Made by a program: the position numbers and the translations under genes. A DNA stretch of 64,000 bases from Dendrobates tinctorius (Eukaryota): positions 868,001 through 932,000 of the forward strand of contig NW_027362117.1 in NCBI RefSeq assembly GCF_039654945.1, given 5' to 3'. Below the pieces are notes generated by a model that was not told where the DNA came from, did not search any database, and worked only from the letters and a program-made list of their open reading frames with translations. Positions 33,101 through 39,100 of this stretch are shown here, in pieces. Each line of letters starts with the position of its first letter. The stretch's first letter is position 1.

Positions 33101-36100
33101 CCAGAGAACATTCTTCCAAAATGTTTTAGGCTTTTTCAGGTAAGTTTTGGCAAACTCCAGCCTGGCTTTTTTATGTCTCGGGGTAAGAAGTGGAGTCTTC
33201 CTGGGTCTCCTACCATACAGTCCCTTTTCATTCAGATGCCGACGGATAGTACGGGTTGACACCGTTGTACCCTCGGACTGCAGGGCAGCTTGAACTTGTT
33301 TGGATGTTAGTCGAGGTTCTTTATCCAACATCCGCACAATCTTGCGTTGAAATCTCTTGTCAATTTTTCTTTTCCAGCCACATCTAGGGAGGTTAGCCAC
33401 AGTGCCATGGGCTTTAAACTTCTTGATGACACTGCGCACGGTAGACACAGGAACATTCAGGTCTTTGGAGATGGACTTGTAGCCTTGAGATTGCTCATGC
33501 TTCCTCACAATTTGGTTTCTCAAGTCCTCAGCAGTTCTTTGGTCTTCTTTCTTTTCTCCATGCTCAATGTGGTACACACAAGGACACAGGACAGAGGTTG
33601 AGTCAACTTTAATCCATGTCAACTGGCTGCAAGTGTGATTTAGTTATTGCCAACACCTGTTAGGTGCCAGAGGTAAGTTACAGGTGCTGTTAATTACACA
33701 AATTAGAGATGCATCACATGATTTTTCGAACAGTGCCAATACTTTTGTCCACCCTCTTTGTTATGTTTGGTGTGGAATTATATCCAATTTGGCTTTAGGA
33801 CAATTATTTTTGTGTTTTTTCATTTAAGACAAATTAAATGAAGATAATAATACTAAAGAATTTGTGTTTGCAATCATTTTCAGGAAGAAACTGAGTATTA
33901 TCTGACAGAATTGCAGGGGTGTCAATACTTTTGGCCATGACTGTATAAGATCCTGTCTGCAGTCACCACTAGAGGGAGCTCCCTGTATACAGAGATACAT
34001 GATAAGATCCTGTCTGCAGTCACCACTAGGGGGAGCTCCCTGTATACAGAGATACATGATAACATCCTGTCTGCAGTCACCACTAGGGGGAGCTCCCTGT
34101 ATACAGAGATACATAATAAGATCCTGTCTGCAGTCACCACTAGGGGGAGCTCCCTCTATACAGAGATACATAATAAGATCCTGTCTGCAGTCACCACTAG
34201 GGGGAGCTCCCTGTATACAGAGATACATGATAACATCCTGTCTGCAGTCACCACTAGGGGGAGCTCCCTTCTTGGTGGAGCCTGTTGCCCTTTATGGCCA
34301 TTACCTTTATATATGGAGCATAACATTCCTGTTCACTGTCTCCTGCTTCCTGCTCATGGTTTTTTGTTTTGTATTTCAGGACTGGACGTGGCTGATTGTA
34401 CGTCTGATGCTTCTCCATCTCTTTTGTCATAGCTGTGACCTCCACATATGATTGTCCGTGTCTCTGACTTGTGCTTCAGTTCACAGCAGTTCAGCCACAT
34501 TGAAGGGAATGGGACTGAGTTGCAGGACCAAACGTACGACTGCCTTGACTGCAACGCTCGGCTTTGGCTCCTCAGCCTGGTTCTCTATAGTTCAGCTGGT
34601 CCATTCATTCAGTGCCTGGGTGTCAGTTCTGTGGCTCCAGCCAGTTTTATTCCTATTTGATGACCTATGTGTTTCTGATCTCTCTTCCGCGCTCTGTCTC
34701 TTCCGCGCTCTGTCTCTTCCGCGCTCTGTCTCTTCCGCGCTCTGTCTCTTCCGCGCTCTGTCTCTTCCGCGCTCTGTCTCTTCCGCGCTCTGTCTCTTCC
34801 GCGCTCTGTCTCTTCCGCGCTCTGTCTCTTCCGCGCTCTGTCTCTTCCGCGCTCTGTCTCTTCCGCGCTCTGTCTCTTGTTTCTGATCTGCATTTGTGCT
34901 CCTTTACCACTCCTGAATCTTGTAGTTCTTCTTTCCTGGTTCTCACCTCTGCTCCTATCTGCAGTAAGGAGAAAATGGAAAACGGTCTTAGGAGCGCAGG
35001 AAAGAGACTCAGACAAGAGATGAGTTTAAACCACAACGCGTTTCAACGGAGGATCCGTCTTCATCAGGTTTAACCCCATCTCTTGTCTGAGTCTCTTTCC
35101 TGCGCTCCTAAGACCGGTTTCCATTTGCTCATTGCTCCTATCCTCCATTGGAGGTTTTCGGCTGGAGCTGCGGTAGAGACCTGACATCCTTGTCTGCCCC
35201 TGGGTTGCTTCCTAAGCGCTCCTTTATGACCGCTTATCACTGACCCTATCTGCAGTAAGGGCTCACACTCCATACTGTGCGTTACATGATATACGAGATA
35301 TAACAAAATGTTCCTTGATGTGAAGATTTAGCAGATTTGCTTTTTCCCCTCAGATGCTCTGTATGACGATGATGCGCCCCAATATGGTAAGTGAGAATAT
35401 TTATATCAGGTGACCGCTTTATAGCACAATAATGCGACCGGTTCAGTGCAGCAACACAGTGGGCATCACAAGGAGCGGATGAATCAAGGTACATAGGGCA
35501 GGATCGGTGGGCATAAATGGAGCAGGGTCGGTGGGCATAAATGGAGCAGAATTCTGGGTATGATTAGAGCAAGATGCATGGGAATGGATGGGCCAGAATC
35601 TGTGGGCATGAGTGGAGCAGGGTCAGTGGTCAGGTTACAAACGTACAGATGTTTTACCAATGTATTGTATATATTTCTGTATATAGTAATTAGTAAGACA
35701 CTGTCCTGCTCCTCTCCTACCTACAGATTGTAGTTCCTCCTCTCATCCTATAGGGTCTCTGCTCACAACCCTCTTCAGTCACCACAGATAGAAGACAGGG
35801 AGAGGAGGGAGATGCAGCTGCAGCTTCATTCTGTGAGTGAGACTTTAAGCAGTTGGAGGGAAAGCAGCAGATGGAGGAGACTTCTAATGAGATAGAGCAC
35901 AACAATGGGGGTCACACCAGGAAGAGCCCACCCTCTACGGCAGGCAGAGCTTTCCTGCTATGTGTTGGGGGAAAGTTACAATTCAGATCAGTCATTTCCC
36001 GTCTTACATTTCCCGTGGTCGGAGTCAGTCAGTGTGGCCACTAGAAGCCAATCACATAAAGGCACAATGGCAGGCGGACATTCCTACAGACTCCCGATAC

Positions 36101-39100
36101 TGCTAAGCATGGGTGTGGCTGTAAGTGTAACAGGCGGGGCTGTGGTTATGACAGGGGCGGGGCTGTGGTTGTGGCAGCAGAGGGACTGCGAGTGTGGCAG
36201 CAGAGGGACTGCCAGTGTGGCAGCGGAGGGACTGCGAGTGTGGCAGGGGCAGGGCTGTGGCAGGGGCAGAGCTGTGGGTATGACAAGGGGTGGGTATGTC
36301 GATGTGACAGGGGCGTGGCTGTGGGTGTAACAAGGGGCAAGACTGTGATTGTGGCAGGGTGGGGCTGTGGGTGTGCACACAGATAGTGCTGGAGCCGGCG
36401 GTGTCTCGTCAGATCTGTATCTAACACTGTGCATTTCTTTTTAGAACAGGAGTTGCACTATTACGGTGAGATCTGGAGCTTTCTATTCTCCTTTTTTATA
36501 TCATGTAAATAATCCCGCACCCGCGTGTCCTGTAATGCCGATATACTGCCGCACACGGTGACCAATCCACTCAGTATGTAAAGCCGAAATCACGCCGCCG
36601 GCCGGATATCGTAGCCACGCCGTCATCACTTGCCACCAACATTAAGGGTCTGATTCATTTTTTCATTTGCATCTTTTTCATATGTTTTTGGTGTTTTTTG
36701 CTCGGTTTTCATTTATTGCTCACCTGCTTTTTTTTCTTTATTTTCAACATTTTGGGTGGAGTTTAGAGTTCCTCGGTGTTTTTGCCTAATTAATCGATTG
36801 CATCCTTTTAGAAAATCGGAAAGTGTGTTGTGAATGTTCTTCGGACCCCCGTCTCCCCCCCCCCCCGGAGCCCTGTTATGTGCGCCAGATACAGTATGTT
36901 GGAATCATTTTTGCACCATTTTACAAAACATGTGACTTTATGTGCTGAAAGGACACAAAAAAGGTGAAATATAAAGAGAATCTTCTTTACTTTGCTCATA
37001 TTTCATGAATCACCATTTTTGTCATTTTGAAGAACTTGGCACAAGAAATATCAACAAATAATATAACACAAAAAACGCAAATGATGAAATGTATCCAAAG
37101 TGTAAAAAAACAATCGCCATACAGTGCTCCAGTGATATCTCCTTACAGTGCGCAGATAACAGCACCATACACTGCCATATAGTGTCCAAGCGCATGTTAT
37201 ATTGCCATATAGTGTCCAAGACCATGTTATATCGCCATACAGTGTCTGAGCCCATGTTATACTGCCATAGTGTGTCTGACCCCATGTTGTATTGCCATAT
37301 AGTGTCCGAGCCAACTTTATATCGCCATATAGTGTCCGAGCCCATATTATACCGCCATATAGTATTATGGACCATGTTGTACCGCCATATAGTGTCCAAG
37401 CCCATGTTATACAAATATATAGTGTTTGGGCCCATGTTATACTGCCATATAGTATCCGGCATCATATTATACTGCCATATAGTATTCGGGCACATGTTAT
37501 ACTAGTATCAAGCCGATGTTAAACCGCCATGTAGTATTCGGGCCCATGTTATACCGCCATATAGTGTCCAAGCTCTTTTCATACTGCTCTATAGTGTTTG
37601 GGCCCATACTATACTGCCATATAGTATCCGGGACCATGTTATACAGCCATATAGTATCCGGGACCATGTTATACAGCCATATAGTATCCGGCATCATGTT
37701 ATACTGCCATATAGTATCAGGGCCCATGTTATACTACAATATAGTATCCGGCATCATGTTATACTGCCATATAGTATTCGGGCACATGTTATACTAGTGT
37801 CAAGCCCATGTTAAACCGCCATGTAGTATTCGGACCCATGTTATACTGCCATATAGAGTTGGAGCTCATGTCATACTGTTATATTGTCTCTGAGCCCATG
37901 TTATACTCCCATATGTCCAGATTTTTCTAGATGAAATGTTGCCTGAGTCTCCTTTACAAACGTTTATGTGATTCTGTGTCTTTCTTTCTCTCCCTATAGG
38001 ACACCACGACATGGCGGAAGGTAAGTGCTGCACGCTCCCCTCTCCCAACTTCCCTAATATTCTCCTGTGCAATTTAGTTTTTTGAAAGATTTGCATCTAA
38101 TTTATGATTTGTGTCTTTTTCAGATTTAGACCAGGACCGTGGTGCGTACCCTTTACGGTCCCTTTATATAAAGGCATAGATTTAGCACCAGAATTGAGGG
38201 TGGGTGAACACCCCAGTGCAGGGAGGAGGGGTCTGTAGTTTTGTGCGAAGTGTGGCTGAAGTCGCTGACATCTTCTCTTCTTGATATCTAGGAATCTCCA
38301 TGATGACAATGGTGACTTACATAGCGCCAACGCGTAAGTTGTTTCTGTTGGGAAAGTTGTCCTACGATGTAGATTATGAGGCCCCTGCCATTCGCTGAAC
38401 CTCGGGCCCCAGACACAAACTCTAGGAAGTAGGAGCTAACTTTCACCCCCCCCCCATTTTTCGACTATTTTTTTCAGCATCCTGTGAGATGTTCCACGTG
38501 ATAATAGGAAATCCAGATGAATCGGACAGAATCTGCGTCAGGATCACGGAGGCGGATGGTGCTGCTGTCGGGTTATTTCACGATGGAAGGACCGGTAGGT
38601 GACTACTATGTGTTTAAGGGAGGACGCCCAGCAATCATCCCTGCCGCCGCTTATCTCCGGTGCCTGATGTCAGCAATCCTAGAATACAGCGCAACATTCT
38701 CTCTCCAGGTGTCACAGTGAACGGAAAACTGAGCGAAGACGGCGACGGCTTTGTAAGATTTGGTCTGCAGAACAAGAACTTGCAACTGAAGATCGATGTG
38801 AATGAGAATAATATCACCGTAATCCATGAGGAACACGTCTCTCTGTATGACTGGACAGCGGCCATCGAAAGTCCGGGGTCAGTGAGGCTTCGATATAAAT
38901 CCTGATACAGTGTAACCTCATGGATCAGTGCTGAGTCCACACTAGAGTTGAGCGATACCATCCGATACTTCAAAGTATCGTATCGGATGGTATCGGCCGA
39001 TCTTTAAAAAAAGTATCGGTATCGCCGATTCCGATACCGGAAGTCCCATTCAAGTCTATGGGACTTCCGGTATCGGAATAAGAAAAACCCTTTCCTGCCC

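Follow-up and report, generated by a model that had tools for sequence, protein, structure and literature searches.

Human ITIH4 has recently been shown to be a cleavage-activated protease inhibitor: its protease-susceptible region (PSR) is cut by MASP-1 and MASP-2, kallikrein, matrix metalloproteinases and other enzymes, is highly variable between species and behaves in a bait-like manner (Pihl et al., PMC7793589). In human brain, ITIH4 was the most isoform-diverse of 31 genes, and exons 15–16 of the PSR are skipped in some isoforms (PMC12455821). Here we consider a stretch of 64,000 nucleotides (nt) from Dendrobates tinctorius (assembly GCF_039654945.1, contig NW_027362117.1, positions 868,001 to 932,000 of the forward strand), called the window and numbered from its first letter, in which an ITIH heavy-chain gene carries a linker made of six small exons of a single phase.

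The mammalian PSR lies, like the frog linker, between the end of the VIT-VWA body (...LTSMVVT...KP.E) and the C-terminal domain. It is likewise long, flexible and species-variable (PMC7793589) and subject to exon skipping (PMC12455821), and mammalian ITIH4 resembles the frog protein in being without the DPHFII bikunin-coupling motif. On the other hand, the human PSR is said to span two ordinary exons and has 17.3% proline (PMC7793589) and several Arg-Arg sites, whereas the frog linker consists of six phase-1 exons of 18–42 nt and is acidic, tyrosine-rich and furnished with one arginine. The bait region of alpha-2-macroglobulin, an analogy already drawn for ITIH4 (PMC7793589), is also exposed and species-variable, with many cleavage sites that trigger capture; it belongs, however, to an unrelated family that traps covalently through a thioester, and the likeness is one of function only. 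The sulfotyrosine tails of hirudin and gigastasin are acidic, tyrosine-rich, unstructured, exosite-binding segments of secreted protease inhibitors (PMC13376875), without sequence homology to the frog linker, for which sulfation and exosite binding are conjecture. Closest are the anuran orthologs (Ranitomeya, Phyllobates, Bufo, Rana, Spea, Discoglossus and Xenopus itih4), which belong to the same clade and share an all-phase-1 array of 12–54-nt exons and a HYYGH(H/Y)D core; unlike D. tinctorius, which shows only the all-inclusive form, they have annotated cassettes (2–17 isoforms) and extra duplicated units. Tandem-duplicated small exons of one phase that encode a flexible region, the length of which is tuned by differential inclusion, are also found in the PEVK region of titin and in tropoelastin, but these are structural elastic proteins with larger exons, whereas the frog units, in a member of a plasma inhibitor family, are as short as 12–21 nt. 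A limited, targeted literature search found no paper describing a phase-1 mini-exon linker architecture.

Six translated linker exons in an ITIH heavy-chain gene

Exons with the VIT and VWA signatures of an ITIH heavy chain occupy about 15.1–45.8 kb of the window on the + strand. The protein products of this gene are RefSeq XP_073420533 and XP_073420534 ("ITIH3-like" isoforms X1 and X2). The latter (P0154), found by a representative search with one VWA exon followed by a word-indexed search, matches all ITIH exons of the window and includes exactly the peptide obtained by joining the six small exons. Window positions 13154-41481 and 42021-47824 (28,328 and 5,804 bases) match the isoform X1 locus (GCA_039654945.1, JAYMGB010000449.1:881154-915824) at 100% identity, so the window and the RefSeq gene come from the same assembly.

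Each of the six segments (Table 1) is preceded by a pyrimidine tract and AG, is followed by GT, has a length divisible by three and reads open in phase 1. The joined reading frame begins with the G at the end of exon 31429-31586 and closes with the CA at the start of exon 38478. Exact spliced mapping of XP_073420534 onto the window, in which GT/GC..AG introns only were admitted, gave a single chain through the linker. A preliminary description of the stretch had arrived at the same coordinates, borders, lengths and phase by reading the letters, and the peptide that it joined is present exactly in both RefSeq proteins. Its further expectation, that gene predictors could easily miss these exons, proved wrong: all six are already in XP_073420533/4, and the idea of unannotated exons is rejected on that ground. 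Under a microexon limit of about 27–30 nt, exons 1, 3, 4 and 5 qualify, and exons 2 and 6 (33 and 42 nt) do so only under a definition that extends to 51 nt.

Scored with a rough home-made position weight matrix, the acceptors of the six exons reach 7.1–12.9 bits and the donors 3.3–12.2 bits, compared with 7.7–10.6 bits for the pair of accepted exons on either side. Lowest of all score the donors of the 18-nt exons, GTACGT in exon 1 with 3.3 bits and GTGCGT in exon 5 with 6.6 bits. When an acceptor of at least 6 bits and a donor of at least 4 bits were demanded over the 6.9-kb interval, eight open phase-1 candidates, five of the six linker exons among them, were found on the + strand versus one on the reverse complement. 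No Rfam family exceeded its threshold in window positions 31000-39500.

Table 1. Linker exons, their flanking exons and two processing variants in the ITIH gene (positions in the window)
Feature	Positions	Strand	Length	Phase	Peptide or remarks
Last core exon before the linker	31429..31586	+		ends in phase 1, on the first base of a Gly codon	aligns with human ITIH4 565-610; tblastn to frog ITIH proteins
Microexon 1	34380..34397	+	18 nt	1-1	(G)LDVAD; weak donor GTACGT
Small exon 2	35354..35386	+	33 nt	1-1	Gln/His polymorphism at 35382
Microexon 3	36445..36465	+	21 nt	1-1	(E)QELHYY; first half of the HYYGH(H/Y)D core
Microexon 4	38000..38020	+	21 nt	1-1	(G)HHDMAE; best splice sites, 12.9 and 12.2 bits
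Microexon 5	38124..38141	+	18 nt	1-1	(D)LDQDR; donor GTGCGT
Small exon 6	38292..38333	+	42 nt	1-1	fastest-evolving piece
First C-terminal-domain exon	38478..38594	+			joints 38333>38478 and 38594>38709 in 4/4 runs
Intron read-through from microexon 1	34398..34710	+			premature stop after 11 further codons; minority of transcripts
Retained intron stretch	36466..36893	+			then cryptic donor ACA/GTATGT at 36893/36894 joining 38000; one low-depth contig

Assembled contigs of four runs (two species, four studies) were placed on 34300-38950. Runs X1 and X12 (organism A) show 0 mismatches and are taken as D. tinctorius, and runs X2 and X5 (organism B) come from a dendrobatid about 3–4% diverged. The joint between exons 1 and 2 (34397>35354) is present in runs X2, X12 and X5, that between exons 2 and 3 (35386>36445) in run X12, while in run X5 20 letters of exon 3 sit between 35386 and 38000. 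Exons 3 and 4 are joined (36465>38000) in runs X1 and X12, and exons 4 and 5 (38020>38124), as well as exon 6 and the C-terminal domain, in all four runs. Upstream, splicing 31586>34380 follows from the exon letters that precede 34380 in runs X2, X12 and X5, where the terminal letters of the last core exon (CGAAAGAACA) stand as loose ends joined to 34380. The contig joints place the microexons in mRNA, and none bypasses them by direct splicing from 31586 to 38478. The six segments are genuine translated exons, and all six are included by default in expressed mRNA.

Two minor products occur in organism A only. Contigs that begin at the 34380 acceptor with letters of the upstream exon and extend into the following intron as far as 34710 (run X1 record 1, run X12 record 8) have a depth of 10.4 in run X1 and of 45.7 in run X12, the latter versus 280.7 for the spliced joint. 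The stop codon that they reach is not conserved in Ranitomeya or Phyllobates, for which reason a functional truncated isoform is judged unlikely. These read-through contigs stop at a 16-bp tandem array at 34681-34878. In run X12 record 11 is unspliced over 35357-36893, and its joint 36893>38000 has a depth of 33.7 versus 268.6 for 36465>38000. Within exon 2, position 35382 is either A or T (APQY or APHY, Gln to His), T accounting for 173 of a depth of 397 in run X12; T is fixed in organism B, Ranitomeya and Phyllobates, and the difference is probably an allelic polymorphism.

Human ITIH4 was compared through its PDB protein chain and published papers. P0154 aligns over residues 11-606 with residues 16-610 of human ITIH4 (PDB 9c4f) at 639 bits, against 522 bits for ITIH1; the alignment then breaks and weakly resumes at query residue 650 and ITIH4 residue 720. 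The unaligned human stretch (residues 611-719) includes the protease-susceptible region (residues 633-713), and the proposed placement of the six exons, in a linker ahead of the C-terminal domain that is equivalent to the mammalian PSR, is borne out: they connect this domain to the VIT/VWA body. In an AlphaFold2 model built with 46 homologs, the predicted local distance difference test score falls below 50 at residues 593-659, with confident domains on either side and a confident beta-rich domain at 660-850. The approximately 52 residues encoded by the small exons are thus predicted to form a disordered tether from the VIT-VWA body to the C-terminal domain.

The assignment to the ITIH heavy chains was upheld, with human ITIH4 as the best solved relative. 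The Pfam VIT family matches exon 15630-15809 above the cut-off (E 3.6e-11), the VWA families are a precomputed annotation of P0154, and a VWA domain bearing a metal ion-dependent adhesion site (MIDAS) is conserved in the frog gene. A signal peptide is encoded, and the product is predicted to be secreted. For the C-terminal domain, PF06668 (ITI_HC_C) stays under the cut-off in a single-exon scan (E 0.021), the alignment to ITIH4 720-825 is weak, and PDB sequence searches with single C-terminal exons returned nothing useful. The DPHF(I/V)I motif of bikunin coupling and cleavage is missing from the first C-terminal exon; lungfish and bichir relatives retain DPHFVI or DPKFII.

Names given to these genes disagree, UniProt calling the Xenopus ortholog itih4 and NCBI calling the frog genes H3-like. 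In a quick maximum-likelihood tree, from which ITIH1, 2, 5 and 6 were left out and in which Pongo supplied the sole mammalian ITIH4, the gene falls in an anuran clade (Shimodaira–Hasegawa-like approximate likelihood ratio test 100) that is duplicated into A, the gene of the window, and B. This clade stands outside the tetrapod ITIH3 clade and groups with H3/H4-like genes of ray-finned fishes (support 93). A true ITIH3 ortholog, as the NCBI name implies, is rejected because the tree places bona fide amphibian ITIH3 elsewhere. Given this tree, the missing DPHF motif and the higher PDB score for ITIH4 than for ITIH1, ITIH4-like is the best label, although orthology is not settled.

Linker exons and isoforms in other vertebrates

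Five other anuran loci were fetched and their annotated proteins mapped exactly. Ranitomeya variabilis has six exons of equal size (18/33/21/21/18/42 nt), and Phyllobates terribilis has the same six, with exons 4-6 repeated as a further, duplicated block (30 or 21, 18 and 42 nt) whose acceptors are near-identical. In Bufo gargarizans the exons measure 36/18/21/12/33/12/33 nt, the 12+33 pair being duplicated, and in Rana temporaria 24/21/21/21/21/36/48 nt. The linker of Spea bombifrons comprises eight exons between 24 and 54 nt long, and the acceptor tcaatttcatt(t/c)ag is common to six of them. All mapped linker exons in the six anurans are in phase 1 and multiples of three, and linker length among anurans ranges from 38 to 126 residues. 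Not only the sizes but also the splice sites of the six-exon linker are kept in Ranitomeya and Phyllobates. The weak donor GTACGT of exon 1 is conserved in the three dendrobatids, and the exon-5 donor GTGCGT is conserved as well, also in the 12-nt Bufo homolog. Dendrobatids, Bufo and Rana all retain the HYYGH(H/Y)D core together with an exon boundary that follows HY(Y/F), and in Discoglossus, Xenopus and Rhinophrynus the motif can be recognised. As read from these loci, the linker design is old, modular and entirely of phase 1, and its units multiply by tandem duplication of an exon with its intron flanks.

Conserved microexons at orthologous loci, together with the ratio of nonsynonymous to synonymous substitution (dN/dS), had been put forward as a check on the exons, and both bear them out within Dendrobatidae: sizes are the same, and dN/dS is 0.04-0.22 for exons 1-5 and 0.23-0.98 for exon 6, values that are rough given very short sequences. 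Additionally, in all eight isoform models of Hyperolius riggenbachi (P0003, P0352-P0358) two to three immunoglobulin-like domains lie between the HYYVDY core and the C-terminal domain, which reflects either a fused gene model or exon capture into the phase-1 linker.

Linker exons that are skipped as well as included within one species are annotated for Ranitomeya (exon 1), Phyllobates (the copies of exon 5), Bufo, Rana, Spea and Discoglossus; D. tinctorius showed no such pair of junctions. In Ranitomeya variabilis isoform X2, exon 1 is skipped and, as expected for phase 1, the codon at the junction encodes Asp in place of Gly. The seven isoforms of Phyllobates terribilis are accounted for by the optional use of two 18-nt exons (the exon-5 copies), by an alternative donor that changes the exon by 9 nt and by one residue that differs at position 27. 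Annotated isoforms number six in Bufo gargarizans, three in Rhinoderma, two in Engystomops, two in Rana, three in Spea, four in Pseudophryne, two in Xenopus tropicalis and 17 in Discoglossus pictus. Beyond frogs, the isoform labels encountered run up to X49 in Polypterus, X50 in sturgeon, X41 in eel, X8 in bowfin and X44 in hagfish, and lamprey and lungfish have several annotated isoforms each. Wherever isoforms were aligned, they differed wholly or almost wholly in the linker, and in the frog relatives by whole exons. A comparison of two Xenopus tropicalis itih4 isoforms (P0166 and P0169) showed that the long one gains Arg/Lys-rich cassettes (RLRMGSLIRKRVIQKAPNYRKAISHRLH), while the linker of the short one is acidic; splicing may therefore switch the charge character of the linker in this species. 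A linker-focused protein search returned no transcript-derived (Logan) dendrobatid proteins from which further isoforms could be read.

Possible roles of the linker

We consider it probable that the six segments are genuine, symmetric phase-1 exons of an ITIH4-like gene, serially spliced and included by default, which encode a disordered linker at the PSR position and follow an old, modular design. Because every unit is symmetric, the linker can vary without a break in frame, and duplication, loss or skipping of units would alter both its length and its content. It would then serve as an exposed tether or recognition segment setting which proteases or partners engage the heavy chain, and the 18-nt exons 1 and 5, with their conserved weak donors, would be the likeliest regulated units. 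Such symmetric mini-exons, which can be duplicated, lost or skipped in frame, suggest a mechanism for the variation of the bait-like region between species, and public annotations hold up to about 50 isoforms differing only in the linker. If splicing indeed alters protease specificity, a whole family of inhibitors could come from a single liver gene, a matter relevant to the evolution of complement and coagulation control. For the window itself the practical result is modest, the exons being real, already annotated and included by default.

Several observations weigh against parts of this reading. The two D. tinctorius RefSeq isoforms, X1 and X2, differ solely in Lys27, just after the signal peptide, where a tandem acceptor CAGAAG (tccagAAG/ATGGAG) at about 15645-15655 explains the presence or absence of the residue; the linker does not vary between them. 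No joint skipping any microexon was found in the contigs of the four runs, which drop rare variants and in which skipping of exon 1 could show only as a loose end. That these runs are RNA is a guess, and their tissue is unspecified. Splicing 38141>38292 is supported by the RefSeq model and by contig arithmetic (in run X12 record 14, 81 upstream letters equal 42+18+21) and is no listed joint. The isoform sets of the relatives are NCBI models built from short-read junctions, of which the individual junctions are probably real while the ways in which these are combined may stem from inference and not from single molecules. Pongo ITIH4 sits on a long branch at a fork that the tree does not resolve. 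Finally, with one arginine, no lysine and 6% proline, the linker is no evident target for the trypsin-like proteases by which human ITIH4 is cut. The combinatorial splicing suggested in the preliminary description therefore stands in part: relatives have annotated cassette combinations, whereas D. tinctorius has isoforms identical in the linker and no skipping joints, and the proposed number of up to 64 linkers is an upper bound for which this species gives no evidence.

The composition of the linker bears directly on what it might do. Asp and Glu make up 23% of the D. tinctorius linker, Tyr 11%, His 6%, Pro 5.7%, and Lys and Arg 1.9%, compared with 14% Pro and 11% Lys/Arg in Pongo ITIH4; the frog linker thus departs from the Pro-rich, Arg-containing make-up of an ITIH4 susceptible region. 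Equivalence to the human bait is shown for position only, and a bait function would be drawn from the human protein by analogy. As a tentative possibility, the linker could nevertheless be a protease bait tuned by splicing, in which cleavage would trigger protease capture by the VWA body and the choice of microexons would alter the proteases that cut. Its position opposite human ITIH4 residues 611-719, the predicted disorder, the conserved MIDAS-bearing VWA domain and the mechanism and species-variable PSR of the human protein (PMC7793589) are all consistent with this, as are the use of orthologous exons as cassettes in sister genera and the insertion of Arg/Lys-rich cassettes into the otherwise acidic linker of the long Xenopus isoform; moreover, exon 6, rich in Met, Ile and Val, could suit metalloproteases, which are efficient cutters of human ITIH4 (PMC7793589). 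Set against these points, the single arginine is not conserved (Phyllobates has His in its place, and the main form of Bufo is free of Arg), proline stands at 6% versus 17% in human, D. tinctorius shows no splicing variation, and the basic, Pro-rich linkers of the mammalian, PSR-like kind belong to the anuran paralog B rather than to the gene of the window.

Alternatively, the linker might be a constitutive spacer, its small exons being left by repeated duplication; a long, flexible and soluble segment would suffice, and the isoforms of relatives would be splicing noise. All transcripts assembled from two species, like the two RefSeq isoforms, contain the six exons, exon 6 is nearly neutral versus Phyllobates (dN/dS 0.9), length and sequence vary widely among anurans, and the read-through and cryptic-donor products resemble processing errors, all of which would suit such a spacer. 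We regard it as a possibility on the doubtful side. Against it stand the purifying selection on exons 1-5, the retention of the HYYGH(H/Y)D core with its exon boundary over the range from Discoglossus and Xenopus to the dendrobatids, the conservation of the very donors that are weak, in exons 1 and 5, and the fact that in more than ten vertebrate lineages the isoforms vary in no region other than the linker.

A third proposal, which we rate as unlikely, is that of an acidic, tyrosine-sulfated exosite decoy: the linker would bind the anion-binding exosites of complement or coagulation proteases as a module, and would not be a scissile bait. The high share of acidic residues and tyrosine invites this idea, and three of the six linker tyrosines have an acidic and no basic residue within two positions; acidic tyrosine motifs recur in the linkers of Spea, sturgeon and other lineages, and the protein is predicted to be secreted. 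Sulfotyrosine tails of leech inhibitors bind exosites of C1s and thrombin (PMC13376875), and human ITIH4 targets MASP-1 and MASP-2 (PMC7793589). However, no ITIH is known to be sulfated, the motif was judged by eye, the human and paralog-B linkers are basic, and the histidine-rich context could equally point to metal binding.

A broader speculation, to which we likewise give little credence, would combine these elements. The array would be a recognition module programmable by splicing and duplication, in which a conserved acidic core sulfated on its tyrosines (DY..YDDD..YEQE.HYYGHHD) docks exosites of complement or coagulation serine proteases while optional units add or remove scissile or hydrophobic segments. 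The A/B duplication would have split an ancestral mixed linker into an acidic one, in this gene, and a basic, Pro/Arg-rich bait, in paralog B; in Xenopus, with a single gene in the data set, cassettes would still switch between both. The remaining alternative, that the segments are chance open stretches between AG and GT, is rejected on the exact RefSeq match, the contig junctions and the dN/dS values.

Repeats and neighbouring features of the window

The introns around the linker exons are rich in repeats. The intron that precedes microexon 1 contains a 57-bp satellite in two parts (31760-32307 and 33945-34269), interrupted by an element of about 1.6 kb (about 32310-33945) with terminal inverted repeats (cagtcatggccaaaagtattgacacccctgcaat...), putatively Tc1/mariner-like to judge from the wording of these repeats and from long open frames. 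The array in the intron after microexon 1, at which the read-through contigs stop, consists of 12.4 perfect tandem copies of a 16-bp unit (TCTCTTCCGCGCTCTG), and in the intron before microexon 4 a 30-bp unit is repeated about 25 times at 37171-37914. Additionally, a hairpin at 34954-35260 gave, as its best Rfam match at E<=1, a sub-threshold hit to the plant family MIR2118 (56.9 bits versus a gathering value of 85), a match typical of a long inverted repeat; no hammerhead was matched at the same E value. Many contigs from all four runs match this hairpin with an identity of 90-95% and have loose ends to its left and right, a pattern suggestive of a dispersed repeat, for instance a miniature inverted-repeat transposable element.

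Elsewhere in the window, an upstream neighbour with WD-repeat exons lies at 4905-9900 (+); it resembles WDR82, a gene near the ITIH1-3-4 cluster on human 3p21. Downstream, open stretches at 57900-59200 (+) (...YMEKYQYVLAMLFAVEEINASPLLVPNVSLGYEVYDTCYSD...) resemble the ligand-binding domain of a family-C G-protein-coupled receptor (V2R/CaSR-like), and they are followed by a tandem repeat of about 4 kb that is open in all frames. Long open stretches at 1525-2904 and 17677-19264 (+), the second of them inside an ITIH intron, look by eye like putative reverse transcriptases of the long interspersed nuclear element type.

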